Virus record (IMG/VR): IMGVR_UViG_3300032236_002285
Coordinates: 186,001 to 250,000 of that record
Strand: one strand, 5' to 3'
Length of the DNA stretch: 64,000 nucleotides
Part shown: positions 32,369-50,799 of the stretch, in pieces
How positions within the stretch are numbered: the first letter of the stretch is position 1
Layout: each line of letters opens with the position of its first letter
Notes under the pieces: generated by a model
Database searches by the model: none
Seen by the model: the letters and a program-made list of their open reading frames with translations, nothing else
What the model was told of the DNA's origin: nothing
Program-made: the position numbers and the translations under genes

Positions 32369-32457
32369 ATTTGGTAGAATTAAAACTTTTTACTAATTTT
32401 GTATAAAATAAGAACAAAAATAACAAAAGAGACAATAACTTTTTAATATATAAAGAA

Positions 32458-32565
32458 ATGAGAACAAATAATACACATAAACATTTTAGTAAATCGAATA
32501 AGTGGTTTAGCAACCAGTTCGGTACTGAAAGTGTATTGCTCTCAAATAAGATGTTAAAAGTCTAA
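32458..32565 (+). CDS. attenuator leader peptide 1 (His/Phe/Trp)
   Basis: MRTNNTHKHFSKSNKWFSNQFGTESVLLSNKMLKV; between promoter 32370-32401 and terminator. Confidence 0.75.
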   Translation: MRTNNTHKHFSKSNKWFSNQFGTESVLLSNKMLKV

Positions 32566-32584
32566 TTTTAGATAAACAATATTC

Positions 32585-32620
32585 AAAAGTCCGAACTTCA
32601 AAAAAGTTCGGACTTTTTTG
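32585..32620 (+). terminator. attenuator terminator 1
   Basis: AAAAGTCCGAACTT / AAGTTCGGACTTTT followed by T run. Confidence 0.9.
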
Positions 32621-32628
32621 TTTTATAT

Positions 32629-32714
32629 GGTGTCGTTATTGTTAACGGAGAGTCGAAAGACGAGCATCTGGCTCTGTGAAAGCCAGGGTACGGGTTCAAA
32701 TCCCGTACGACACC
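32629..32714 (+). tRNA. tRNA-His(GUG) with G-1:C73 and a hairpin insertion in the D-loop
   Basis: Loop CT-GTG-AA; 8-bp acceptor; GTC-GAAA-GAC in D-loop. Confidence 0.75.
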
Positions 32715-32720
32715 CAAGAA

Positions 32721-32796
32721 GGAACCTAAGCTAATCAGGTGAAAGCACTGGACTGAAAATCCAGGGAGCCCGGATCGTTACCGGGAGGTTCCACCA
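32721..32796 (+). tRNA. tRNA-Phe(GAA)
   Basis: CTGGA-CTGAAAA-TCCAG; CCA encoded; atypical T-loop ATCGTTA. Confidence 0.85.
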
Positions 32797-32804
32797 AAAT
32801 AAAT

Positions 32805-32878
32805 GGTGTATGTAGCTCAATCGGTAGAGCGTCGGTTTGTGGAGCCGAAGGTAGCGGGATCGTAACCCGTCATTCACC
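32805..32878 (+). tRNA. tRNA-His(GUG)
   Basis: TCGGT-TTGTGGA-GCCGA; G-1 and C73. Confidence 0.85.
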
Positions 32879-32883
32879 CAAAA

Positions 32884-32955
32884 GGAGACTTAGCTGAGAC
32901 GGTTTAGCGTTTGGTTGAAGCCCAAAAGAGGTCGGTTCGATTCCGGCAGTCTCCA
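32884..32955 (+). tRNA. tRNA-Phe(GAA)
   Basis: TTTGG-TTGAAGC-CCAAA. Confidence 0.8.
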
Positions 32956-32961
32956 CAACAT

Positions 32962-33032
32962 ACGTCATACAGACAAGGTGTCGGTCAGGTCTCCAAAACC
33001 TCGACGGTGGGGTTCGATTCCTCAATGGCGTG
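32962..33032 (+). tRNA. tRNA-Trp(CCA)
   Basis: AGGT-CTCCAAA-ACCT; G73. Confidence 0.8.
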
Positions 33033-33038
33033 CTAAAT

Positions 33039-33110
33039 ACGGGTATGGTGTAATGGCTAACATTTTGGTCTCCAAAACCAAAGATCTTGATTCGAATTCA
33101 GGTACCCGTG
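33039..33110 (+). tRNA. tRNA-Trp(CCA)
   Basis: TTGGT-CTCCAAA-ACCAA; G73. Confidence 0.85.
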
Positions 33111-33174
33111 CTAAAAGGTTCGTGTCTTTTTTTGATGTTTCGGACTTAATATATAGAATAAATAAGTTTTATAT

Positions 33175-33717
33175 ATGAAAGAGGAAATATTAAAGTTAAG
33201 AAGTGAAGGTAAGACTTTTAATGAAATAAAAGAAATACTAAAATGTTCAAAATCTACAATATCTTACCATTGTAGTGATGAACAAAAAGAAAAATCTAGA
33301 AATAGAACTAGAAAAAGAAGAGAGAATTTAATTCACTCTAAACTTGAAAGTTTTATCTATAGAAAAGAAAAAAATGTAAAAGAAGGAATAAGAAAGTTTC
33401 AAAAAACTGACTCAAATTCTAAAGGAAGGGTTAATAGTAATATTAAAACAACATTTAATTGGGTTGATGTTTTGAATAAGTTTGGTGAAAATACATATTG
33501 TTATTTGTCTGGAGAGAAAATTAACCTATATGAAGATAACTACAACTTTGACCATATTATACCAGTTAGTAAAAATGGTAGTAATAGTTTAGAAAACTTA
33601 GGAATTCTACACGAAAAAGTAAATAGAATGAAATCTGACTTATCACCAGAAGAATTAATAGAATGGTGTAAAAAGATTTTAGAGTTTAATAATTATAAAA
33701 TAGAAAAATTAGATTAA
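33175..33717 (+). mobile_element. HTH-HNH endonuclease inserted in tRNA array
   Basis: DHIIPVSKNGSNSLENLGILHEKVNRMKSD. Confidence 0.85.
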
Positions 33718-33791
33718 GAGTATGAAAACTAAATTGAAATATAAACGCTAGGCAACGATTCGAGTCACGGATCGTTGCCCTCAACAACAAT

Positions 33792-33864
33792 GATTCCGTA
33801 GCTCAATTGGTGGAGCTTCCGGCTTTTAACCGGAAGGATGTGAGTTCGAACCTCACCGGAATCA
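33792..33864 (+). tRNA. tRNA-Lys(UUU)
   Basis: TCCGG-CTTTTAA-CCGGA. Confidence 0.9.
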
Positions 33865-33871
33865 CTAAAAT

Positions 33872-33958
33872 GGTTCTGTCGCTTAGCGGCTATAGCAACT
33901 GGCTTTTAACCAGTAGAGATAATGTTCTCAACCGTGGGTTCGAGTCCCACCAGGACCA
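33872..33958 (+). tRNA. tRNA-Lys(UUU) with long variable arm
   Basis: ACTGG-CTTTTAA-CCAGT then GAGA-taatgt-TCTC arm. Confidence 0.8.
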
Positions 33959-33966
33959 CTAAAAAC

Positions 33967-34050
33967 ACTCCTGTCGCTCAGAGGTCGAGAGCAACTGGCT
34001 TTTAACCAGTAGACGCAAGTCCATCGTAGGTTCGAATCCTACCAGGAGTA
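33967..34050 (+). tRNA. tRNA-Lys(UUU) with long variable arm
   Basis: ACTGG-CTTTTAA-CCAGT then GAC-GCAA-GTC arm. Confidence 0.8.
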
Positions 34051-34054
34051 CTAA

Positions 34055-34137
34055 CGATTCGTCGCATAGTGGCTATTGCACCTGACTCTTAATCAGGCGA
34101 AGAAATTCAATCGTGGGTTCGAGTCCCACCGGGTCGA
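34055..34137 (+). tRNA. tRNA-Lys(CUU) with long variable arm
   Basis: CCTGA-CTCTTAA-TCAGG then GAA-gaaa-TTC arm. Confidence 0.8.
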
Positions 34138-34145
34138 CAAAAAAT

Positions 34146-34251
34146 AGTCAAGTGGCGAAAAGGCGAGACGCATAAGAGTTAATCTTTTGGGGTAGACCGA
34201 AGAACCGCGAAAAAGAAGGTTCCCATACAGGTTCGAGTCCTGTCTTGACTA
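34146..34251 (+). tRNA. atypical tRNA-Leu(UAA)-like gene with very long variable region
   Basis: AGTCAAG/CTTGACT acceptor, A73, Leu-like D arm, weak anticodon arm GT-TAA-TC, ~35 nt variable region. Confidence 0.55.
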
Positions 34252-34260
34252 CAAAAATAT

Positions 34261-34404
34261 GGAGAGAGTAGCTCAGTTGGTTAGAGCACGTATTCATTCT
34301 CTGACAAGGATTCTCTGATTATGGTCAACATAATTAGTAGTGATGTTAAGAGATACTTCGGTCTGTTAAACCCGTGGTCGTAGGTTCGAGTCCTACCTCT
34401 CTCC
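34261..34404 (+). tRNA. tRNA-Asn(GUU) interrupted by ~69 nt structured insert
   Basis: Removing 34291-34359 restores CGGGT-CTGTTAA-ACCCG; extra G-1:C73 pair. Confidence 0.7.
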
Positions 34405-34432
34405 CAAATATTAGATTATTAAAAAAATAAAA

Positions 34433-35065
34433 ATGGAAATAAAATTAGAAAGTACTTACAAAGGAACAAGGATTCTTTTTAAGGACAGCGCTAAAAATAA
34501 AAGAAAGTTACTAAATAGCATGATTGATATTTTAGAATCATATGGTTATCAGGAAATAATGATACCTATTATTCAAAAACAAGAAACATTTCAGTCAAAA
34601 GTTGGTGATGAAAACAGAAATATGATGTTTAACTTCAAAGACAGAGGTGATAGAGATTTGTGTTTATCTCCAGAGTACACGGCAATTGTTCAACAATTAT
34701 CAAGTGATAAAATGAAATATGATAAAGATGTAAAAATGTTTTATATCGGTGAATGTTTCAGAGGAGAAAATACACAATCTGGAAGATGGAGACAATTTAC
34801 ACAATTTGGAGTTGAAGTTATAAATCCAAGTAAAGATTATACTGATGAAATGGTTGAAATTGCCAGTAAACTAATTGAGTTAGTTACAAAAAATTATGAA
34901 GTAAATCTGGAAACTACAAGAGGACTTGACTACTACAAAGGTGGAAAAGGATTTGAAATTGCTTGTCCCGAATTAGGATCATCTAAGCAAATTTGTGGAG
35001 GTGGTTCATATGATGGTGGTATTGGATTTGCTGTTGGTGTAGATAGATTACTATTATGTAAATAA
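34433..35065 (+). CDS. minimal histidyl-tRNA synthetase-like catalytic core (no anticodon-binding domain)
   Basis: Motif 1 GYQEIMIPII, LSPEYTA, motif 2 FRGENTQSGRWRQFTQFGVE, GLDYY, motif 3 GGGSYD-GGIGFAVGVDRL; only 210 aa. Confidence 0.8.
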   Translation: MEIKLESTYKGTRILFKDSAKNKRKLLNSMIDILESYGYQEIMIPIIQKQETFQSKVGDENRNMMFNFKDRGDRDLCLSPEYTAIVQQLSSDKMKYDKDVKMFYIGECFRGENTQSGRWRQFTQFGVEVINPSKDYTDEMVEIASKLIELVTKNYEVNLETTRGLDYYKGGKGFEIACPELGSSKQICGGGSYDGGIGFAVGVDRLLLCK

Positions 35066-35074
35066 AAATAAATT

Positions 35075-35202
35075 GGGGATGTAGCTCAGTGGTAGAGAAA
35101 ACTATCTCTTTTGAAAATTTACCTCATAAGAGTGTTGATTGAGAGAGTTACTTCGTATATTTTGAAATTATAAGGTCGTGGGTTCGAATCCCACCATCCC
35201 CA
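35075..35202 (+). tRNA. tRNA (anticodon probably UGA) interrupted by ~55-60 nt structured insert
   Basis: GGGGATG/CATCCCC acceptor, canonical D and T arms, insert ending TTACTTCG; anticodon assignment uncertain. Confidence 0.6.
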
Positions 35203-35281
35203 CAAAAAAGATTTGGTAAATCAATAAAAAAGATTTACTTTTGTAAAAACAAAGAAAAGAAAATTAATATATAATAAAGTT

Positions 35282-35359
35282 ATGAAAACAATTATGCTTA
35301 CATCGAAGTCGTCAAGTAGTCGCTCGTCAAAACCGAGTGAGGTTCGATCGTATTCATAA
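35282..35359 (+). CDS. attenuator leader peptide 2 (Ser/Arg)
   Basis: MKTIMLTSKSSSSRSSKPSEVRSYS; 10 Ser and 2 Arg in 25 aa; promoter 35212-35243. Confidence 0.85.
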   Translation: MKTIMLTSKSSSSRSSKPSEVRSYS

Positions 35360-35382
35360 TATTCGTATAAAGATATTTTATG

Positions 35383-35415
35383 AAACCCTCGAACTTAATG
35401 TTTGAGGGTTTTTTT
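35383..35415 (+). terminator. attenuator terminator 2
   Basis: AAACCCTCGAAC-ttaat-GTTTGAGGGTTT followed by T run. Confidence 0.9.
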
Positions 35416-35426
35416 GTTTTATATAT

Positions 35427-35501
35427 GGTTCTATAGTTTAAATGGATAAAACACTCGGCTACGAACCGAGAGACGTGAAGGTTCGAATCCTTCTGGAACT
35501 A
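35427..35501 (+). tRNA. tRNA-Arg(ACG)
   Basis: CTCGG-CTACGAA-CCGAG. Confidence 0.9.
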
Positions 35502-35507
35502 CAAATT

Positions 35508-35598
35508 GGAGAAGTCAACCGAAATTGGTATCGGCCTAGTCTTGAAAACTAGTCATCGGCGATGAGTTGGTGTGTCGGTTCGAGTCCGACCTTCTCCG
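35508..35598 (+). tRNA. tRNA-Ser(UGA)
   Basis: CTAGT-CTTGAAA-ACTAG, long V arm, G73. Confidence 0.9.
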
Positions 35599-35603
35599 CA
35601 ACC

Positions 35604-35689
35604 GGAAGGAGTCCGAATGGACGAGGAACTTGTCTTGAAAACAAGCGGCTGTAAAAGGTTTGGGGGTTCGATTCCCTCTTCTTCCGCCA
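35604..35689 (+). tRNA. tRNA-Ser(UGA)
   Basis: CTTGT-CTTGAAA-ACAAG, G73, CCA. Confidence 0.9.
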
Positions 35690-35691
35690 AT

Positions 35692-35777
35692 GGAGAGTAA
35701 AGTAGCCAGGGTGCTACCACCGCCTGCTAAGCGAGTGGCCCATTAATTTGGGTGTGATTCGAGTTCACTGCTCTCCG
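35692..35777 (+). tRNA. tRNA-Ser(GCU)
   Basis: CGC-CTGCTAA-GCG, long V arm, G73. Confidence 0.85.
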
Positions 35778-35789
35778 CAAAAGATAACT

Positions 35790-35876
35790 GGAGAGTTGTC
35801 CGAGTGGTTTATGGAGCACGCTTGGAAAGCGTGTGTACTCGAAAGGGTACCGAAGGTTCGAATCCTTCACTCTCCG
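35790..35876 (+). tRNA. tRNA-Ser(GGA)
   Basis: CACGC-TTGGAAA-GCGTG, long V arm, G73. Confidence 0.9.
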
Positions 35877-35891
35877 CAAAAAAATTATATT

Positions 35892-36194
35892 ATGGATACA
35901 AGATATTTGACAAGACCAACATCATTTGAAACTACATTAGCTATTCTACAAGAATTGCTAAGTGAAAGATTATCACCGGAATGGAGGAGAATTTGGGTGC
36001 AAGGGTCTAATTCTGGTAGAACAAGATTCTGCTTTACTATATTTCCCAATACTGGAACATATACGATGAGATTTCATGATGTTGGTTCGTTTAGACAATT
36101 TAGAACCGATGGTGAATTAGAATCTGAATTTGAGCTATTAAATAGATTTATTACTTCTTTATCTGAAGGTGTATTAAAAGACATAATTATCTGA
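35892..36194 (+). CDS. hypothetical protein
   Basis: Start reassigned to ATG 35892; the upstream extension in the ORF track overlaps tRNAs. Confidence 0.55.
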   Translation: MDTRYLTRPTSFETTLAILQELLSERLSPEWRRIWVQGSNSGRTRFCFTIFPNTGTYTMRFHDVGSFRQFRTDGELESEFELLNRFITSLSEGVLKDIII

Positions 36195-44239: not shown

Positions 44240-44997
44240 TGAAACCCAAAGTTAGTGTAATAATACCTTGTTATAATTATGATAAGTATATTGAACAATG
44301 TCTTATGTCTGTTGTTTTGCAAAATCGAGATTTTAATATTGAGGTTTTAATAGGTGATGACAATTCAACAGATAAGAGTATTGAAATTATTGAAAGATTT
44401 AGTAGGTATTATAGATATGATAATTTAAAATATAAAATATACTCACATGATAAAAATTTAGGTGAAATTAATAATACAAAATTTCTTTTAGATAATTGTG
44501 AAGGTGAATATATTGCTTATTTAGATGCTGATGATTACTGGACAGATCCAAATAAATTAAAAAATCAATTAGAGTTTTTAGATAATAATAAAGACTACTC
44601 ACTTTGTATAACAGGCTATATTCAATTAAAAAATGGTGTTGATTATAACCCAAATGTTAATTTTAAAAGCTGGCTTTGCCCTAAAGATATAAATAATATG
44701 AATTCTGATGCTCTGTCTAAAGGTAATATAGTTGGTTCATCATCTTCTAGAGTATTCAGAAATTATAAAGATTTAGTTAAAGATTACTTTTATGATTTTC
44801 CTTATTCAGATTGGGTAATGAATTTTGAATTATCTCTAAAAGGTAAAATAGGTTATTTAAATTTTCCAAGTTATGTTTATCGAATGCATGATAATTCTTT
44901 ATCTACAAAAGATTTACAAGCTGAGAATAAAGAAGAACTATATAATAAAAGAGTTAGTATTTTAAAGTCTGAGCTAAATAAATATCTAAATAATTAA
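44239..44997 (+). CDS. GT2 glycosyltransferase
   Basis: VSVIIPCYN, GDDNSTD, YIAYLDADDYW. Confidence 0.9.
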   Translation: MKPKVSVIIPCYNYDKYIEQCLMSVVLQNRDFNIEVLIGDDNSTDKSIEIIERFSRYYRYDNLKYKIYSHDKNLGEINNTKFLLDNCEGEYIAYLDADDYWTDPNKLKNQLEFLDNNKDYSLCITGYIQLKNGVDYNPNVNFKSWLCPKDINNMNSDALSKGNIVGSSSSRVFRNYKDLVKDYFYDFPYSDWVMNFELSLKGKIGYLNFPSYVYRMHDNSLSTKDLQAENKEELYNKRVSILKSELNKYLNN

Positions 44998-45073
44998 AAA
45001 TTTTATTGTATATTTGTAAAAAATAAGAAAAGGGACTAAACTTTTTTAATATATACACATACAATAAAAACAT

Positions 45074-45145
45074 TGCGGGGTAGAGAAGAGGCATCTCGCC
45101 AGGCTCATAACCTGGAGGTCAGTGGTTCGAATCCACTCCCCGCTA
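45074..45145 (+). tRNA. initiator tRNA-fMet(CAU)
   Basis: 1:72 mismatch, CCAGG-CTCATAA-CCTGG. Confidence 0.85.
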
Positions 45146-45309
45146 CAAATAGAAAGACAGGACAAATATCTGATCAGCCCCAAGAAGGTAGGGTAGAGTA
45201 CTCTGAACAAGTCTTTCTAAGGAATTAAAAAAATATTAAAAATATTTGGTGAAATAAAAATTTCACCGTATATTTGTAAAACAATTAAGAAATTATAAAA
45301 ACTAAAACA

Positions 45310-45387
45310 ATGACAACTATTACTAACATAGCGTATTATTATGAGGGAGAGCGTAGCTCAAACGTCAGACTAATGTCTATGTCGTAA
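45310..45387 (+). CDS. attenuator leader peptide 3 (Tyr/Glu)
   Basis: MTTITNIAYYYEGERSSNVRLMSMS; promoter 45245-45276. Confidence 0.85.
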   Translation: MTTITNIAYYYEGERSSNVRLMSMS

Positions 45388-45409
45388 TGGTTTCATTATG
45401 ATATTTTCT

Positions 45410-45440
45410 AACCCAGTCTGACTTTCAGACTGGGTTTTTT
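45410..45440 (+). terminator. attenuator terminator 3
   Basis: AACCCAGTCTG-acttt-CAGACTGGGTT followed by T run. Confidence 0.9.
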
Positions 45441-45455
45441 GTTTTAAAATAAATT

Positions 45456-45540
45456 GGGAGTATAACGTCAGCGGTGTGTAAGCCGCCCCTAATCAAAGAG
45501 ACGTATAGAGGTAACTTGTGTGCAAATCCAGGTACTCCCA
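45456..45540 (+). tRNA. degenerate tRNA-like element (no resolvable anticodon arm)
   Basis: Perfect GGGAGTA/TACTCCC acceptor and TGCAAAT T-loop-like segment; middle does not fold canonically. Confidence 0.4.
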
Positions 45541-45546
45541 CAAAAT

Positions 45547-45618
45547 GGTCCTGTCGACTAATGGTCAGGTTACAAGACTTTCAATCTTGAGATGCGGGTT
45601 CGATTCCCGTCAGGACTA
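45547..45618 (+). tRNA. tRNA-Glu(UUC)
   Basis: CAAGA-CTTTCAA-TCTTG. Confidence 0.9.
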
Positions 45619-45625
45619 CAAATAT

Positions 45626-45711
45626 GCTACGGTATGCAAACCGGAATAAGCGACCAGACTTTCAATCTGGACATCGAAAGATGTGTGCGGGTTCGAGCCC
45701 CGTCCGTAGTA
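45626..45711 (+). tRNA. tRNA-Glu(UUC) with long variable arm
   Basis: CCAGA-CTTTCAA-TCTGG then ACATC-GAAA-GATGT. Confidence 0.8.
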
Positions 45712-45718
45712 CAAATAA

Positions 45719-45802
45719 GGGAGAGCGCCAACGTTGGAGAGTTGGGCTTGTCTGTAAAACAAGTGGCTTACGCCTGAGTGGGTTCGATTCCCACCTCTCC
45801 CA
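45719..45802 (+). tRNA. tRNA-Tyr(GUA)
   Basis: CTTGT-CTGTAAA-ACAAG, V arm. Confidence 0.85.
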
Positions 45803-46103
45803 CAAAAAATTAAACAAAAAAAATGAAAAGTTGAAAGTGAAAGATGATAATTATGTTGGTAGTTATCTTTTTATCAAAACCAGTAATGTCACAGAACATT
45901 ATTAAATACCAACAAAAAACAAAAATTGATTTGAGATTAAATAAGTCAATTGAAAACCAAAAGGTTCTTTTTAAGAAAACTAAATTAGAATCTGATAACT
46001 TTGAAATTAAAATTAGTCACGATTAGCTGATTAATAAAAAGTTTAGAATCAGGTTTACTTTATGTTTAGACATGAAAGAATTTTTTACCAAAGAGTAAAA
46101 AAT

Positions 46104-46176
46104 GATGCTATCGACTAATGGTTTAGGTCGCCATCCTCTCAAGGTGGAAATACGGGTTCGAATCCCGTTAGCATTA
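46104..46176 (+). tRNA. tRNA-Glu(CUC)
   Basis: CCATC-CTCTCAA-GGTGG. Confidence 0.9.
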
Positions 46177-46241
46177 CAAAAAATTAAACAAATGTTTGGA
46201 TATTAAAAAAGTATCCTTATCTTTGTAAAAGAATAAAAAAT

Positions 46242-46313
46242 GGTCCCGTCGTCTAATGGTTAGGACAATGCCCTTTCACGGCATAGATTTCGGTTCAAAT
46301 CCGTGCGGGACTA
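46242..46313 (+). tRNA. tRNA-Glu(UUC)
   Basis: ATGCC-CTTTCAC-GGCAT. Confidence 0.9.
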
Positions 46314-46402
46314 CAATAAAAACAGATAACTCCGGTATGGTCTCAATCATTACTTAGAACCGGGCTTTGGAAAGTTACAAGTTGAGATTCTGTTTTTTAT
46401 AT

Positions 46403-46485
46403 TGGAAGGTGGCCGAGTGGTTAATGGCGCTTGACTGTAAATCAAGTCTCTTGCGAGTACGGGGGTTCGAATCCCTCCCTTCCAA
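46403..46485 (+). tRNA. tRNA-Tyr(GUA)
   Basis: CTTGA-CTGTAAA-TCAAG, V arm. Confidence 0.9.
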
Positions 46486-46550
46486 CAAAAATAAAAAAAA
46501 TTAAAAGGGAAGACAAAACTTTTTATATATACATTAATATAATTAAAACG

Positions 46551-46631
46551 ATGAAAAATTTAACTAACATATCAACAGCAATCATAGGAGGCGGCGCGGG
46601 AGCGAATGTCACTGGCTGGACTATGTTATAA
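46551..46631 (+). CDS. attenuator leader peptide 4 (Gly/Ala/Ile)
   Basis: MKNLTNISTAIIGGGAGANVTGWTML. Confidence 0.85.
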   Translation: MKNLTNISTAIIGGGAGANVTGWTML

Positions 46632-46655
46632 TCTTTCATCAAAAGAATTAAACGT

Positions 46656-46688
46656 AACCCAGTCAGTGAAAATTGACTGGGTTTTTTT
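46656..46688 (+). terminator. attenuator terminator 4
   Basis: AACCCAGTCAGT-GAAA-ATTGACTGGGTT followed by T run. Confidence 0.9.
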
Positions 46689-46692
46689 ATTT

Positions 46693-46776
46693 CGGCAGGT
46701 ACCGATGGTGTCTTATACACACTATAACCGTAGCGGGAAGTTGAAAACGTGGGTTCGAATCCCACCCTGCCGACCA
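46693..46776 (+). tRNA. D-arm-deficient tRNA-like gene, anticodon UAU (Ile-like)
   Basis: CGGCAGG/CCTGCCG acceptor, A73-CCA, canonical T arm, GGTGT-CTTATAC-ACACT, long V region, almost no D arm. Confidence 0.5.
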
Positions 46777-46836
46777 ACTGAGAAAACAGTAAATCGTGAG
46801 CCAACACTAAAACCATCCCACCAGGATGTAAAACTC

Positions 46837-46908
46837 GCGGGTATCGTATAGTGGCTATTACTCCTTCCTTCCAAGTAGGAGACGTCGGTTCGATTCCGGC
46901 TACCCGCT
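46837..46908 (+). tRNA. tRNA-Gly(UCC)
   Basis: Loop CT-TCC-AA; GCG acceptor, U73. Confidence 0.9.
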
Positions 46909-46916
46909 CAAATTTT

Positions 46917-46991
46917 GGGGTCACATGTACCAAGGCTAGGCGATGATGCTTTGCAAGCATCGTGTGGTGAGTTCGATTCTCACTGGCTCCA
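46917..46991 (+). tRNA. tRNA-Ala(UGC)
   Basis: GATGC-TTTGCAA-GCATC; G3:U70. Confidence 0.85.
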
Positions 46992-47010
46992 CAAAAAATG
47001 AATAGTAAAA

Positions 47011-47178
47011 ATGACTATATTCAAATATTTAGTAGATGGAAAACTTTACTTCTTGTACAATGGAGTAAATGGATATATTGCTATACCATTTGAGCATAGT
47101 GGAAATACTATATCAAATCCAAATCTTGATGAATTTGTACCAGTGAAAATGGGCAATGGTTCTGATGGATTTGTATAA
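47011..47178 (+). CDS. small hypothetical protein (55 aa) inside tRNA array
   Basis: Hand translation MTIFKYLVDGKLYFLYNGVNGYIAIPFEHSGNTISNPNLDEFVPVKMGNGSDGFV. Confidence 0.5.
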   Translation: MTIFKYLVDGKLYFLYNGVNGYIAIPFEHSGNTISNPNLDEFVPVKMGNGSDGFV

Positions 47179-47181
47179 AAT

Positions 47182-47256
47182 GCGAAAGTCGTATAGTGGC
47201 TATTATATCAGCTTGCCAAGCTGAGGACGGCAGTTCGATTCTGCTCTTTCGCTCCA
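47182..47256 (+). tRNA. tRNA-Gly(GCC)
   Basis: TCAGC-TTGCCAA-GCTGA; U73-CCA. Confidence 0.9.
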
Positions 47257-47260
47257 ATAT

Positions 47261-47298
47261 GCCGGATGATCCACCGTTGAATCGCGGTGCCGGCTCCA
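47261..47298 (+). ncRNA. tRNA minihelix-like element (acceptor plus T-like arm, ends UCCA)
   Basis: GCCGG/CCGGC and CACCG/CGGTG stems, TTGAATCG loop. Confidence 0.5.
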
Positions 47299-47372
47299 GG
47301 GGAATTAGCTCATTTGGCTAGAGCGCTTGTCTGGCAGACAAGAGGTGACGAGTTCAAATCTCGTATTCTCCA
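47299..47372 (+). tRNA. tRNA-Ala(GGC)
   Basis: CTTGT-CTGGCAG-ACAAG; G3:U70. Confidence 0.9.
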
Positions 47373-47379
47373 CTAATAA

Positions 47380-47459
47380 GCGGGTGTCGTATAGTGGCAC
47401 GTAGTAGATTATGCCGGTCTTCCAAACCGGAGATGTGAGTTCGATTCTCATCACCCGCT
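47380..47459 (+). tRNA. tRNA-Gly(UCC) with enlarged D-loop
   Basis: CCGGT-CTTCCAA-ACCGG; U73. Confidence 0.85.
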
Positions 47460-47461
47460 CA

Positions 47462-47605
47462 AAGATAGTAGTAATGTACGAGTGTTACTTCGTATTTCCA
47501 ACGACTAGTTCAGGTTCGAATCCTGGGTTCCGCTCAAATGATAATATGCGGGATTAGTGTAACGGTAGCACAGTAAAAACACACTCAGCAAATTTTCTCT
47601 ATCTT
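47462..47605 (+). tRNA. circularly permuted tRNA (Gly-type acceptor) flanked by the split insert module
   Basis: 3' half (anticodon, T arm, GTTCCGC-T) at 47491-47534 precedes 5' half (GCGGGAT plus D arm) at 47548-47574; flanks pair AAGATAG/CTATCTT and GAGTGT/ACACTC. Confidence 0.7.
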
Positions 47606-47609
47606 ATTA

Positions 47610-47679
47610 GGGCCAGATGCCAACGGCAGGTCAACTCGCTTGCACCGAGATTGTTTGGGTTCGATTCCCACTGTGTCCA
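47610..47679 (+). tRNA. degenerate tRNA-Ala(UGC)-like gene
   Basis: CTCG-CTTGCAC-CGAG; G3:U70-like pair; bulged acceptor. Confidence 0.5.
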
Positions 47680-47835
47680 CTATATTTATTTTTCATAGCT
47701 ACCTAAACTTCAATATATTAATTATATATATACCATTAGATTAGATTAAAGAAAGGTTTTTAGACAGTTTAGTATTTTTAGATTAAAGAATGACTTGAAG
47801 TTAGACAATTAACTAAAAAATAACTATGCTAAAAA

Positions 47836-50799
47836 ATGAAAAAGATCCTAAAGTTCTTACTAGTGTCATTGACTCTAGTATTTTTTGTGCCTAAACAAGC
47901 ACAAGCCTCTCATTGCGCTGGAGCTGAATTATTATTCCAATGGCTTCATGACTCAACTTATCAACTTTATTACAAGTTTTACCGTGATTGTGCCGGTATT
48001 AATGAGCCAACAAATGTTACAGTTTGTTGTAGTAACAATTGTAATTCAACTACAATCAACGTAATTTTAAACAAAGTTACTACACTTATTCCTCCTGGTG
48101 TAAATAATGGAAATGAAGTTGCTAGAGTTTGTCCTGGTATACATACCACTTGTGGTAATCCAGCCGGAACAACACCTGGCTACAGAGAATGGTGGTATGC
48201 TAATACTGTAACTCTACCATCAAGATGTAACCACTGGACTTTTTCAGTAAGTCAGTCAGCTAGAAACTCTGGTATTACTAATTTATCTAATCCAGGTTCT
48301 CAAAATCTTTATACAGAAGCCACACTTGATAATAGAGATGCTCAAGGTGATACCTCACCTTTCTTTTCTGTTAAGCCGGTCCCGTATATCTGTGCTAATA
48401 TACCATACACTTATAACAATGGAGCTTATGACTTAAATAACGACTCTATGGTGTTTAAAATTGTTCAACCAAATGGTGGCTCAGGTTGTCCTCCAACCAC
48501 GTCAGCCATTGCTTTTGCTAATACAACACCAAGTTTAAATCTAACTGATAATCCTTTACAAACAAACAATACTTTTTCTATAAATGCTCAAAATGGATTG
48601 ATGAGTTTTACTCCAGCTGGAACACAAATTGCAGTTGTAACTATTCAAGTAGATGAATATAGAAATGGTAGAAAAATTGGTTCTGTAATGCGTGATATTC
48701 AAATTATTGTTTTGTCTTGTAATGTTCAGCAACCAGAAGTAAATATATCTGCTGCTTCTTTAAATAATGCAACTCTTGATAATAATGGAAACATTACAGC
48801 TTGTGCTGGAACACCTTTTAGTTTTTGTTTTGATGCTACAACACCAGATTCAAATGGTATTTTACTCGCATCTGATAACTCAAATATTGTAATGCCTAAT
48901 TCAGTAGTATCATATACTAATCAAACTACAGATACGGTTACTGGTTGTTTTTCTTGGTGGCCTTCTGTGTATGATACAGGTTATAAAATTTTTACAATAA
49001 CTATAATGGATTCATCTTGTCGTCCTCCTGGCTTAATGTTTTCACAAACATTTACCTTACCAATTTATGTTTGGCCTGCGACTAATATTCTAAGTGATAC
49101 CACAATCTGTAGAGGTGGTGCTGCAAATTTACTTGCTGTTGGTGGTGGAAATTTTATTTGGTCGGTTTTACCAGGAGGTTCTGCTTTATCAACTTTAAAC
49201 TGCACAAACTGCTCAAATCCAGTTGCTACTCCAATAATCACAACTCAGTATGTAGCTACATCTCAAATAACAAATGCTATTTGTAAAAATAAAGATACGG
49301 TAACAGTAGCGGTTATTCAACCATTTCAGATTATACTACCTGATACAACAACATGTGTTAATAATTCTTTACAATTAAATGCAGTAGTTAATACAACAAA
49401 TAATTATACTATATCCTGGACACCAAATACTTATTTAAGTAATGCTGGTATTAATAATCCAATTGTAACACCACCATCTGGTCAATCATTGATAACTTAC
49501 TATGTTAAAGTTTCTTCAATTGGTTCATCAGCTTGTTCAGTTACAGATACATTCAAATTAAAAGTTTTACAAGGATTTACTATCTATAATCATGATACAA
49601 CAATTTGTCTTGGTAAATCAGTAAATATAGCCGGCTCTGGTGATGCTTTATATAATTATACTTGGACACCAACCAGTGGTATAAGTACAATACTTACACC
49701 ATCAATAACACCAAATGTAGTTACAACAACAACGTATATTTTAACAGGTAAATATCCTGGTTGTAAAGATTCTACTAATAAAATTAAAATCACAACAGAA
49801 CCTGTACCAACTGTAGTAGCTGGTGCTGATAGACAAATATGTAGTGGTGATACTATTCATCTTACACCTTTAGTTACTCCAAGTTATCCATATGTTTACA
49901 CTTGGACACCAGGATCTTCATTAGATAATCCAAATTCTGAATTTGCTATCTTTTCAGGATTAATCACAACTCATTTATCACTAACTGTTAAATCACCAGT
50001 TGCTAATTGTTCATCAGCTGATAGTTTAATTATTAATGTAGTTAAACAATCTTTCTTAAAGGTTTCACCACAAGACACTTCAATTTGTCCATCTGATACA
50101 GTTATGATTAAATTAACCACACCTAATGATAAGTTAGTTATTTTTAATTGGAGCCCTCATAATTTTATCAGTGATTATAATTCAGTTAATCCTTATTTAT
50201 ACCCACCAACATCAATGGTTTATACTGCTTGGGCTACTGATACAGCTGGTTGTAATGATACTATATCAGCTTATATTGAAATTAGACCAGGTGCTGTAAT
50301 TGACATGCCTACATCAATTGGTTTATATCCTGGTGATTCTTATCAAATAACACCTCAAACTAACTGTACTAAATTTATTTGGTTTCCATCAAGTGGTTTA
50401 AATTATGACTCATTATCAAATCCAACAGTGACCAACTTAGGAGTTAATACTAAGTATATAGTTATTGGTCAAACAGAATGGGGATGTAAAGTATCTGATT
50501 CAATAAATGTAATGGTTATTAATGATTCTTATATTGATATACCTAATGCTTTTTCACCTACAGGTGATCACAATAAAACACTAAAAGTAATTCATTTAGG
50601 TTCTGCTACTCTTGAATATTTTAGAATATACAATAGATGGGGTAATAAAGTTTTTGAAACAAATGATATTAATGTTGGATGGGATGGTACTTATAATGGT
50701 CAAGCTCAATCACAAGGTGTTTATGTTTATGAAGTAAAAGCAATAACATATAAAGGTAGGGTCTTTATTAAACAAGGCAATATAACTTTGATGAAATAA
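47836..50799 (+). CDS. secreted adhesin-like protein with T9SS type-B (gliding motility-associated) C-terminal domain
   Basis: Signal peptide, ASHCAGAE start, Ig/PKD-like repeats, IPNAFSP...FRIYNRWGNKVFE...WDGTYNG...GVYVY...GNITLMK. Confidence 0.9.
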   Translation: MKKILKFLLVSLTLVFFVPKQAQASHCAGAELLFQWLHDSTYQLYYKFYRDCAGINEPTNVTVCCSNNCNSTTINVILNKVTTLIPPGVNNGNEVARVCPGIHTTCGNPAGTTPGYREWWYANTVTLPSRCNHWTFSVSQSARNSGITNLSNPGSQNLYTEATLDNRDAQGDTSPFFSVKPVPYICANIPYTYNNGAYDLNNDSMVFKIVQPNGGSGCPPTTSAIAFANTTPSLNLTDNPLQTNNTFSINAQNGLMSFTPAGTQIAVVTIQVDEYRNGRKIGSVMRDIQIIVLSCNVQQPEVNISAASLNNATLDNNGNITACAGTPFSFCFDATTPDSNGILLASDNSNIVMPNSVVSYTNQTTDTVTGCFSWWPSVYDTGYKIFTITIMDSSCRPPGLMFSQTFTLPIYVWPATNILSDTTICRGGAANLLAVGGGNFIWSVLPGGSALSTLNCTNCSNPVATPIITTQYVATSQITNAICKNKDTVTVAVIQPFQIILPDTTTCVNNSLQLNAVVNTTNNYTISWTPNTYLSNAGINNPIVTPPSGQSLITYYVKVSSIGSSACSVTDTFKLKVLQGFTIYNHDTTICLGKSVNIAGSGDALYNYTWTPTSGISTILTPSITPNVVTTTTYILTGKYPGCKDSTNKIKITTEPVPTVVAGADRQICSGDTIHLTPLVTPSYPYVYTWTPGSSLDNPNSEFAIFSGLITTHLSLTVKSPVANCSSADSLIINVVKQSFLKVSPQDTSICPSDTVMIKLTTPNDKLVIFNWSPHNFISDYNSVNPYLYPPTSMVYTAWATDTAGCNDTISAYIEIRPGAVIDMPTSIGLYPGDSYQITPQTNCTKFIWFPSSGLNYDSLSNPTVTNLGVNTKYIVIGQTEWGCKVSDSINVMVINDSYIDIPNAFSPTGDHNKTLKVIHLGSATLEYFRIYNRWGNKVFETNDINVGWDGTYNGQAQSQGVYVYEVKAITYKGRVFIKQGNITLMK

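Follow-up and report, generated by a model that had tools for sequence, protein, structure and literature searches.

A candidate leader-peptide attenuator preceding arginine and serine tRNA genes of a huge phage

Introduction

Why should a serine- and arginine-rich open reading frame (ORF) of only 25 codons, followed by an intrinsic terminator, lie directly in front of the arginine and serine tRNA genes of a huge phage? Bacterial tRNA genes are generally thought to be controlled globally, by growth rate and the stringent response, and not species by species. The locus is located in a stretch of 64,000 nucleotides, termed here the window (positions 186,001 to 250,000 of IMG/VR record IMGVR_UViG_3300032236_002285). 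A preliminary description of the sequence proposed that the ORF is the leader of an attenuator for tRNA-Arg(ACG) and four Ser tRNAs, that its Ser and Arg codons are read by the downstream UGA, GCU and ACG anticodons, and that GTTCGA within the ORF pairs with TCGAAC in the terminator 5' arm, with GAGGTT offering an alternative register. In this study, these proposals were examined by comparative sequence analysis and RNA folding; all of the evidence is computational.

The window has a G+C content of about 30%. Its closest relatives among deposited phages are the 634-kb and 642-kb uncultured phage genomes LR745206.1 and LR756502.1, which belong to the Mahaphage clade, have many tRNAs and synthetase genes and have predicted Bacteroidetes hosts (PMC7162821). 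A 987-aa protein encoded in the window (47836-50799) has a C-terminal CHU_C (type IX secretion) domain, which agrees with that host range.

The leader ORF and the downstream tRNA genes

The leader ORF encodes MKTIMLTSKSSSSRSSKPSEVRSYS and lies in an intergenic stretch between a tRNA-like gene and tRNA-Arg(ACG) (Table 1). Ser appears 10 times (TCG four times, TCA three times and AGT three times) and Arg twice (CGC and CGA). The observation made in the preliminary description is therefore confirmed, including GTTCGA at 35342-35347 and TCGAAC at 35389-35394. The codon-to-anticodon match also holds: UGA reads TCA/TCG, GCU reads AGT and ACG (inosine) reads CGC/CGA. Three of the four Ser tRNA genes and tRNA-Arg(ACG) are called by ARAGORN and Rfam, whereas the Ser(GCU) gene is missed by both; it folds as a class-II cloverleaf with the anticodon loop CUGCUAA, and its positional homologs in relatives are called Ser(GCU).

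Table 1. Positions of the features of the Ser/Arg module and of related elements in the window
Feature	Position	Strand	Description and basis
Candidate promoter	35212-35243	+	Bacteroidetes-type; TTTG at 35212-35215 and TACTTTTG at 35236-35243; inferred from the Bacteroidetes -33/-7 consensus
TTAATATATA box	35264-35273	+	8 nt upstream of the leader ATG; may be a promoter or initiation element
Leader ORF	35282-35359	+	ATG at 35282, 25 sense codons, TAA at 35357-35359
Control codons 8-16	35303-35329	+	TCG AAG TCG TCA AGT AGT CGC TCG TCA; stalling here leaves the antiterminator free in all 36 homologs (predicted)
Internal hairpin P1	35320-35340	+	35320-35326 pairs with 35334-35340; possibly a pause hairpin; 96.8% of cells paired; closing pair varies G-U/G-C/A-U
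Antiterminator 5' strand	35340-35359	+	Last 7 codons and the stop codon; 35340-35347 pairs with 35389-35396, and 35350-51 / 35353-59 with 35378-35386
Antiterminator 3' strand	35378-35396	+	Overlaps the terminator 5' arm
Intrinsic terminator	35383-35415	+	12-bp stem (35383-35394 / 35400-35411), 5-nt loop, run of 7 T (35409-35415); -17.2 kcal/mol; 97.7% of cells paired, with changes on both sides in 8 of 12 stem pairs
tRNA-Arg(ACG)	35427-35502	+	First gene after the terminator, 11 nt after the T-run; 62.5 bits
tRNA-Ser(UGA)	35508-35599	+
tRNA-Ser(UGA)	35604-35689	+
tRNA-Ser(GCU)-like	about 35693-35779	+
tRNA-Ser(GGA)	35790-35877	+
His/Phe/Trp module	32458-32617	+	Leader ORF 32458-32565 (HKHF..KWF..QF), terminator 32585-32617; then His-like, Phe, His, Phe, Trp-like and Trp tRNAs; homologs in about 17 loci
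Tyr/Glu module	45310-45436	+	Leader ORF 45310-45387 (YYYEGE), terminator 45410-45436; then Glu and Tyr tRNAs
Gly/Ala module	46551-46685	+	Leader ORF 46551-46631 (GGGAGA), terminator 46654-46685; then Gly and Ala tRNAs
Lys mini-ORF	33722-33779		MKTKLKYKR and stop, abutted by a 12-bp hairpin; then four Lys tRNAs
tRNA-like genes with insertions	34262-34405; 35075-35203		Insertions of 44-50 nt; ARAGORN with introns calls them Leu(UAA) and Glu(UUC)
HNH endonuclease gene	33175-33717		Between tRNA clusters
HisRS-related gene	34433-35065		210-aa protein matching only the class-II HisRS catalytic core

The leader uses codons that are rare in this genome. In 44 long ORFs of the window, Ser is 8.1% of residues, and TCG, CGC and CGA are among the rarest codons, at 1.9, 0.6 and 0.7 per 1000 codons, respectively, whereas AGA, the normal Arg codon, occurs at 23.7. 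The probability of at least 12 Ser plus Arg residues in 24 codons is 3e-6, and that of at least four TCG codons is 1e-7. This ORF is the most Ser-enriched of 371 small ORFs in the window. However, other small ORFs show equally extreme single-residue biases, a finding in line with the possibility that a chance Ser-rich ORF lies next to an ordinary terminator of an upstream unit, with the tRNAs expressed from elsewhere. Enrichment alone would thus not be decisive, and the case rests on the match to the downstream tRNAs and on conservation. Coincidence is regarded as very unlikely, because there is no room for a promoter between the T-run and tRNA-Arg, the module is conserved in 36 contigs, the antiterminator covaries, and cognate matching holds at five clusters in the window and in 17 leader clusters overall (see below).

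The terminator lies between the only plausible promoter region and the tRNAs, so the tRNAs can be expressed only by read-through. The possibility that the T-run plus GTTT is itself a Bacteroidetes-type promoter was considered and rejected, as its TTTG elements are spaced by 13 nt, unlike the roughly 26 nt of that consensus. TAnnTTTGTA also lies upstream of the leaders of two other modules (at 32394 and 45269) and of tRNA-Met (at 45009). The motif TTAATATATA is phage-wide, with 19 copies in the window against 3.3 expected (about sixfold; 0 of 100 shuffles reach 19), and usually lies a few bases upstream of gene or leader starts, including the His/Phe/Trp leader (32443), tRNA-Met (45046) and a site at 33146. 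No Shine-Dalgarno sequence precedes the leader ORF, which is expected for a Bacteroidetes host but leaves initiation unproven.

The tRNA-like genes with insertions (Table 1) give a weak tmRNA-clan hit in Rfam, and the second of them is conserved just upstream of the Ser/Arg leader in several relatives. Lys(UUU/CUU) and Glu(UUC) tRNAs of 84-88 nt (33872-34138 and 45626-45712) apparently have long extra arms, which is unusual for these normally class-I tRNAs. In two related contigs (L015 and L019), ARAGORN calls a suppressor tRNA with anticodon UUA, which reads the TAA stop, in the tRNA chain after the Lys tRNAs; in the window, TAA ends 36 of 44 long ORFs, so TAA recoding is not evident here.

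Conservation of the module

The module is conserved in 36 distinct huge-phage and metagenome contigs. Three of these were retrieved independently of the leader sequence: the two reference genomes (L001 and L002) through a neighboring gene and a third contig (L004) through a neighboring protein. All three carry the same module in front of tRNA-Arg(ACG) and Ser tRNAs, although the flanking protein is only 46-48% identical. The remainder were found by pattern searches in IMG/VR and in metagenomes, from which nine GC-rich chance hits were discarded. As the pattern used for most homologs fixes AGTCGCTC, TTCGA and GTATTC, conservation of those bases is by construction. A scan of 185,579 bacterial and archaeal genomes with the leader pattern returned only seven GC-rich chance hits, so the element appears confined to phage-like contigs.

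Several features of the 36 homologs are signatures of a translated ORF selected for its codons. ATG and TAA are invariant and in frame, and ORF lengths are 75, 78, 81 or 105 nt; every indel is thus a multiple of three, including a 30-nt insertion. Ser makes up 38% of all residues. The codon after AGT-CGC-TCN is TCA in 27 sequences and AGT in 9, a switch that keeps serine but changes all three bases. TCG supplies 28% of leader Ser codons against about 2% in genes.

These features bear on the possibility of an RNA-only switch, in which the leader is not translated and the conserved region binds a factor or a tRNA directly in a T-box-like manner. Strong nucleotide-level conservation of AGTCGCTC, GTTCGA and GTATTCATAATAG, together with the well-supported structures, is in favor of this possibility. 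However, in-frame indels, preservation of Ser across the TCN/AGY families, and invariant ATG and TAA are against it, as is the absence of any T-box or other riboswitch family even at E<=1. In addition, leaders of quite different sequence carry different residues that match different tRNA sets, which an RNA-binding model does not predict. This possibility is therefore considered very unlikely.

Terminator and antiterminator structures

The terminator was found both by a terminator scan and by folding, and the region folds far better than shuffled sequences (z = -4.7). On a covariance-model alignment, 97.4% of cells of the terminator plus hairpin P1 are paired and eight pairs change on both sides; 0 of 500 shuffles reach this, and slid controls give 21-56%.

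Folding of the nascent RNA up to the terminator loop reveals a second helix, which is 17 bp in the window and 11-18 bp (mean 16) in every homolog. This helix uses the last seven codons and the stop codon on one side and the terminator 5' arm on the other, so it excludes the terminator. The GTTCGA:TCGAAC pairing of the preliminary description is its core, whereas the proposed GAGGTT register is better described as an extension of the same helix (AGGTTCGA:TCGAACTT). The base before TTCGA and the base after TCGAA are G-C in 25 sequences, A-T in 7 and G-T in 4, without mismatch. In the A-T cases, the terminator 3' arm has changed as well, resulting in a three-way covariation. Cognate duplexes average -14.6 kcal/mol, whereas partners swapped between phages average -13.7 (0 of 20,000 permutations) and shuffled strands -5.6. 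MAFFT alignments and a covariance-model realignment put the terminator and the TTATGAA segment in inconsistent registers, and the pairing count for the antiterminator on the realignment (73% of cells) is therefore an underestimate; only its two outer pairs are informative, and both covary. Anchor-based tables and duplex energies were used instead.

The peptide itself is fairly well conserved (for example, SRSSK.SEVR.YS), raising the possibility that the ORF encodes a functional Ser-rich micropeptide whose mRNA is simply ended by the terminator. This is considered very unlikely because the conserved C-terminal half coincides base for base with the antiterminator strand, and because the other leaders of the window share the architecture but not the composition, each matching its own tRNA cluster.

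Predicted dependence on ribosome position

A 31-nt ribosome footprint was masked at each codon and the nascent RNA was folded. In all 36 sequences, the antiterminator is the minimum-energy structure when the A site is anywhere from codon 2 to about codon 16, the end of the Ser/Arg run. It is stabilized by 8-14 kcal/mol at these positions and is lost when the ribosome occupies the last approximately nine codons or the stop. Ser/Arg codons 19, 22, 23 and 25 lie where stalling would favor termination, so not all 12 cognate codons can be regulatory; these four are probably constrained by the RNA helix and not by their meaning.

Without a ribosome, the antiterminator is still the predicted fold of the nascent RNA in 32 of 36 sequences, though weakly (0 to -7.6 kcal/mol). 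In the full-length fold, the 5' and 3' halves of the ORF pair with each other as a possible anti-antiterminator (1:2-type helix); 90% of cells are paired but no covariation was found, and hairpin P1 is conserved. These observations do not settle whether an untranslated leader terminates, and thus a trp-like default-off state is not established. They are consistent with an alternative in which the leader is translated and senses Ser/Arg-tRNA but the output differs: it might be Rho-type termination, RNase processing or altered stability of the tRNA precursor, or the default state might be read-through, such that translation acts as a simple two-state off switch and not as a trp-like three-state device. 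The Lys module described below, which has a leader and a hairpin but no T-run, is also in line with this alternative. However, the hairpin of the Ser/Arg module is followed by 6-7 T in every homolog and has the geometry of an intrinsic terminator, and the antiterminator overlaps exactly its 5' arm. The alternative is therefore considered unlikely, although less so than the other rivals.

Similar modules at other tRNA clusters

The same design occurs before three other tRNA clusters of the window (Table 1), and these three modules show the same predicted ribosome-dependent switch, with the control codons just 5' of the boundary. The Lys mini-ORF is atypical: it is conserved in L001, L002 and another contig (L032), and is abutted at its stop codon by a 12-bp hairpin whose sequence differs completely between phages while the structure is kept. 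As it has no T-run and no antiterminator, it is not a classical attenuator, and its function is unexplained. Over the five leaders including the Ser/Arg leader, cognate enrichment gives Fisher P = 2e-9, and the true leader-to-cluster assignment is the best of 120 permutations.

Searches for the shared leader start MKNLTNI and for the Tyr/Glu leader uncovered many further modules in other phage contigs, in which leaders read like a list of the downstream tRNAs. In contig L111, LPFMPTVEFQLKI precedes Gln, Phe, Met, Thr, Val, Leu, Glu, Leu, Pro, Ile and Lys tRNAs. Similarly, STCLLPSSRTQRPH precedes Cys, Gln, Pro, Arg, Thr, His, Met and Ser tRNAs, and SSQRFFQVVFFVQQ precedes Gln, Phe and Arg tRNAs. 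One leader lists 13 residues in a row that match its 11 downstream tRNAs. Over 17 leader clusters from 68 distinct leaders, 159 of 464 residues are cognate, against 76 +/- 11 after permutation of tRNA sets (0 of 100,000 permutations match). The predicted switch boundary again falls at the end of the cognate run; the Asn/Ile module of contig L070 was not covered by this analysis. Leaders for different amino acids, in the window (35282, 46551, 45310 and 32458) and in contigs L079-L149, share a similar N-terminus (MKNLTNI, MKTIINT, MTTITNI or MRTINTH), suggesting common descent by duplication or a shared functional handle for initiation or pairing.

A further attenuator-like element precedes protein genes. 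In L001 (5687-5781) and L002 (4853-4952), and also in L005, L008, L029, L030, L041 and L048, a 14-codon ORF (MK.LHTYKI.IDWG and stop) is accompanied by a terminator (AGCCCAGTCAAT..ATTGACTGGGTT), and its last codons repeat the terminator 3' arm. It lies upstream of a protein operon that in L001 includes the HisRS-like gene. It looks like an attenuator, but the amino acid that it would sense was not identified.

Discussion

The best explanation, held with fairly high confidence, is a ribosome-mediated (leader-peptide) transcription attenuator that gates a phage tRNA operon. In this view, transcription starts upstream of the leader, which is translated while RNA polymerase moves on. When Ser-tRNA or Arg-tRNA(ACG) is scarce, the ribosome would stall at control codons 8-16, leaving the RNA of the last seven codons free to form the antiterminator, and polymerase would read through into the five tRNA genes. 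When these tRNAs are plentiful, the ribosome would run on to the last codons and the TAA and cover the antiterminator 5' strand, and the terminator would form, stopping transcription before the first tRNA. The outcome would be negative feedback, in which each tRNA cluster is made when its own decoding capacity is limiting. The analysis itself demonstrates the anatomy, conservation, covariation, predicted structure switching and codon/tRNA correspondence, whereas translation of the ORF, its coupling with polymerase and the in vivo response are inferences. No transcript, ribosome-profiling or reporter data are included, read-through under limitation of cognate charged tRNA was not measured, and neither the RNA polymerase that transcribes the region nor its coupling to ribosomes has been identified. 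In addition, the sensor cannot distinguish low tRNA from low amino acid. Every element named in the preliminary description is present and survives comparative testing, and its interpretation as an attenuator is thus supported computationally but not proven.

A broader hypothesis, which is considered probable, is that huge phages and a wider set of phage contigs sharing the MKNLTNI-type leader start run a set of tRNA-specific homeostats. Each tRNA array would be preceded by a table-of-contents leader peptide made of the codons read by that array, so that its transcription is switched on by ribosome stalling for lack of exactly those tRNAs. This would be the first known isoacceptor-specific feedback control of tRNA gene transcription, and would provide the phage with a built-in sensor of host tRNA depletion, for example by anticodon nucleases or host shut-off.

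Such an attenuator would be a direct, self-correcting measure of decoding capacity for particular codons. It would explain how phages with dozens of tRNA genes avoid making them when the host supply suffices, and how they could replace individual tRNAs that the host or its defense nucleases remove. The multi-amino-acid leaders are an unusually readable natural example of combinatorial sensing. The elements are short, modular and predicted from sequence alone, so they are directly testable; they could also serve as codon-specific translation-stress reporters and offer a way to annotate odd phage tRNAs by reading the leader.

Comparison with known systems

The element is not a member of any Rfam leader family. 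At the gathering threshold, only tRNAs were found, and sub-threshold leader-like hits at E<=1 were driven by the terminator: His_leader (RF00514) scored 24.7 bits against a threshold of 49, Thr_leader (RF00506) 24.4 against 55, L10_leader (RF00557) 23.7 against 44 and the trpB motif (RF04312) 30 against 59, with E-values of 0.16-0.65. T-box riboswitches of Firmicutes (RF00230) similarly exert tRNA-specific control of a terminator/antiterminator choice upstream of translation-related genes, but a T-box binds uncharged tRNA directly and needs no translation, whereas the evidence here points to a translated ORF. No T-box hit was found even at E<=1 in 32400-36000 or 44950-47750.

The tRNA arrays of the huge Mahaphage genomes include those of the nearest relatives of the window, and the study describing them does not mention attenuators, leaders or terminators (Al-Shayeb et al. 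2020, PMC7162821); the regulatory layer proposed here is additional. Full-text literature searches likewise found no report of leader-peptide control of tRNA genes.

Classical leader-peptide attenuators of amino-acid biosynthetic operons in enterobacteria (trpL, hisL, pheL, leuL, thrL and ilvL; for pheL, PMC3082878) share with this module a short ORF rich in the relevant codons, an intrinsic terminator, and an overlapping antiterminator whose 5' strand is covered by a ribosome that reaches the stop codon. The control codons lie just upstream of the switching boundary, and rare codons are used to sharpen the response, as with the CUA codons of the leu leader. The module differs in that it is phage-encoded, that the regulated genes are tRNA-Arg and tRNA-Ser and not biosynthesis, transport or synthetase genes, and that some relatives would sense up to about 10 amino acids in a single leader; a 1:2 superattenuation hairpin is not established. 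The closest system in logic is the pheM-pheST attenuator of E. coli, in which a Phe-rich leader controls phenylalanyl-tRNA synthetase. In both cases, leader-peptide attenuation controls a component of the translation machinery for the same amino acid, closing a feedback loop on charged-tRNA supply. The target in pheM-pheST is a synthetase protein, whereas in the arrangement proposed here it is the tRNA genes themselves, so that the product feeds back on its own sensor directly.
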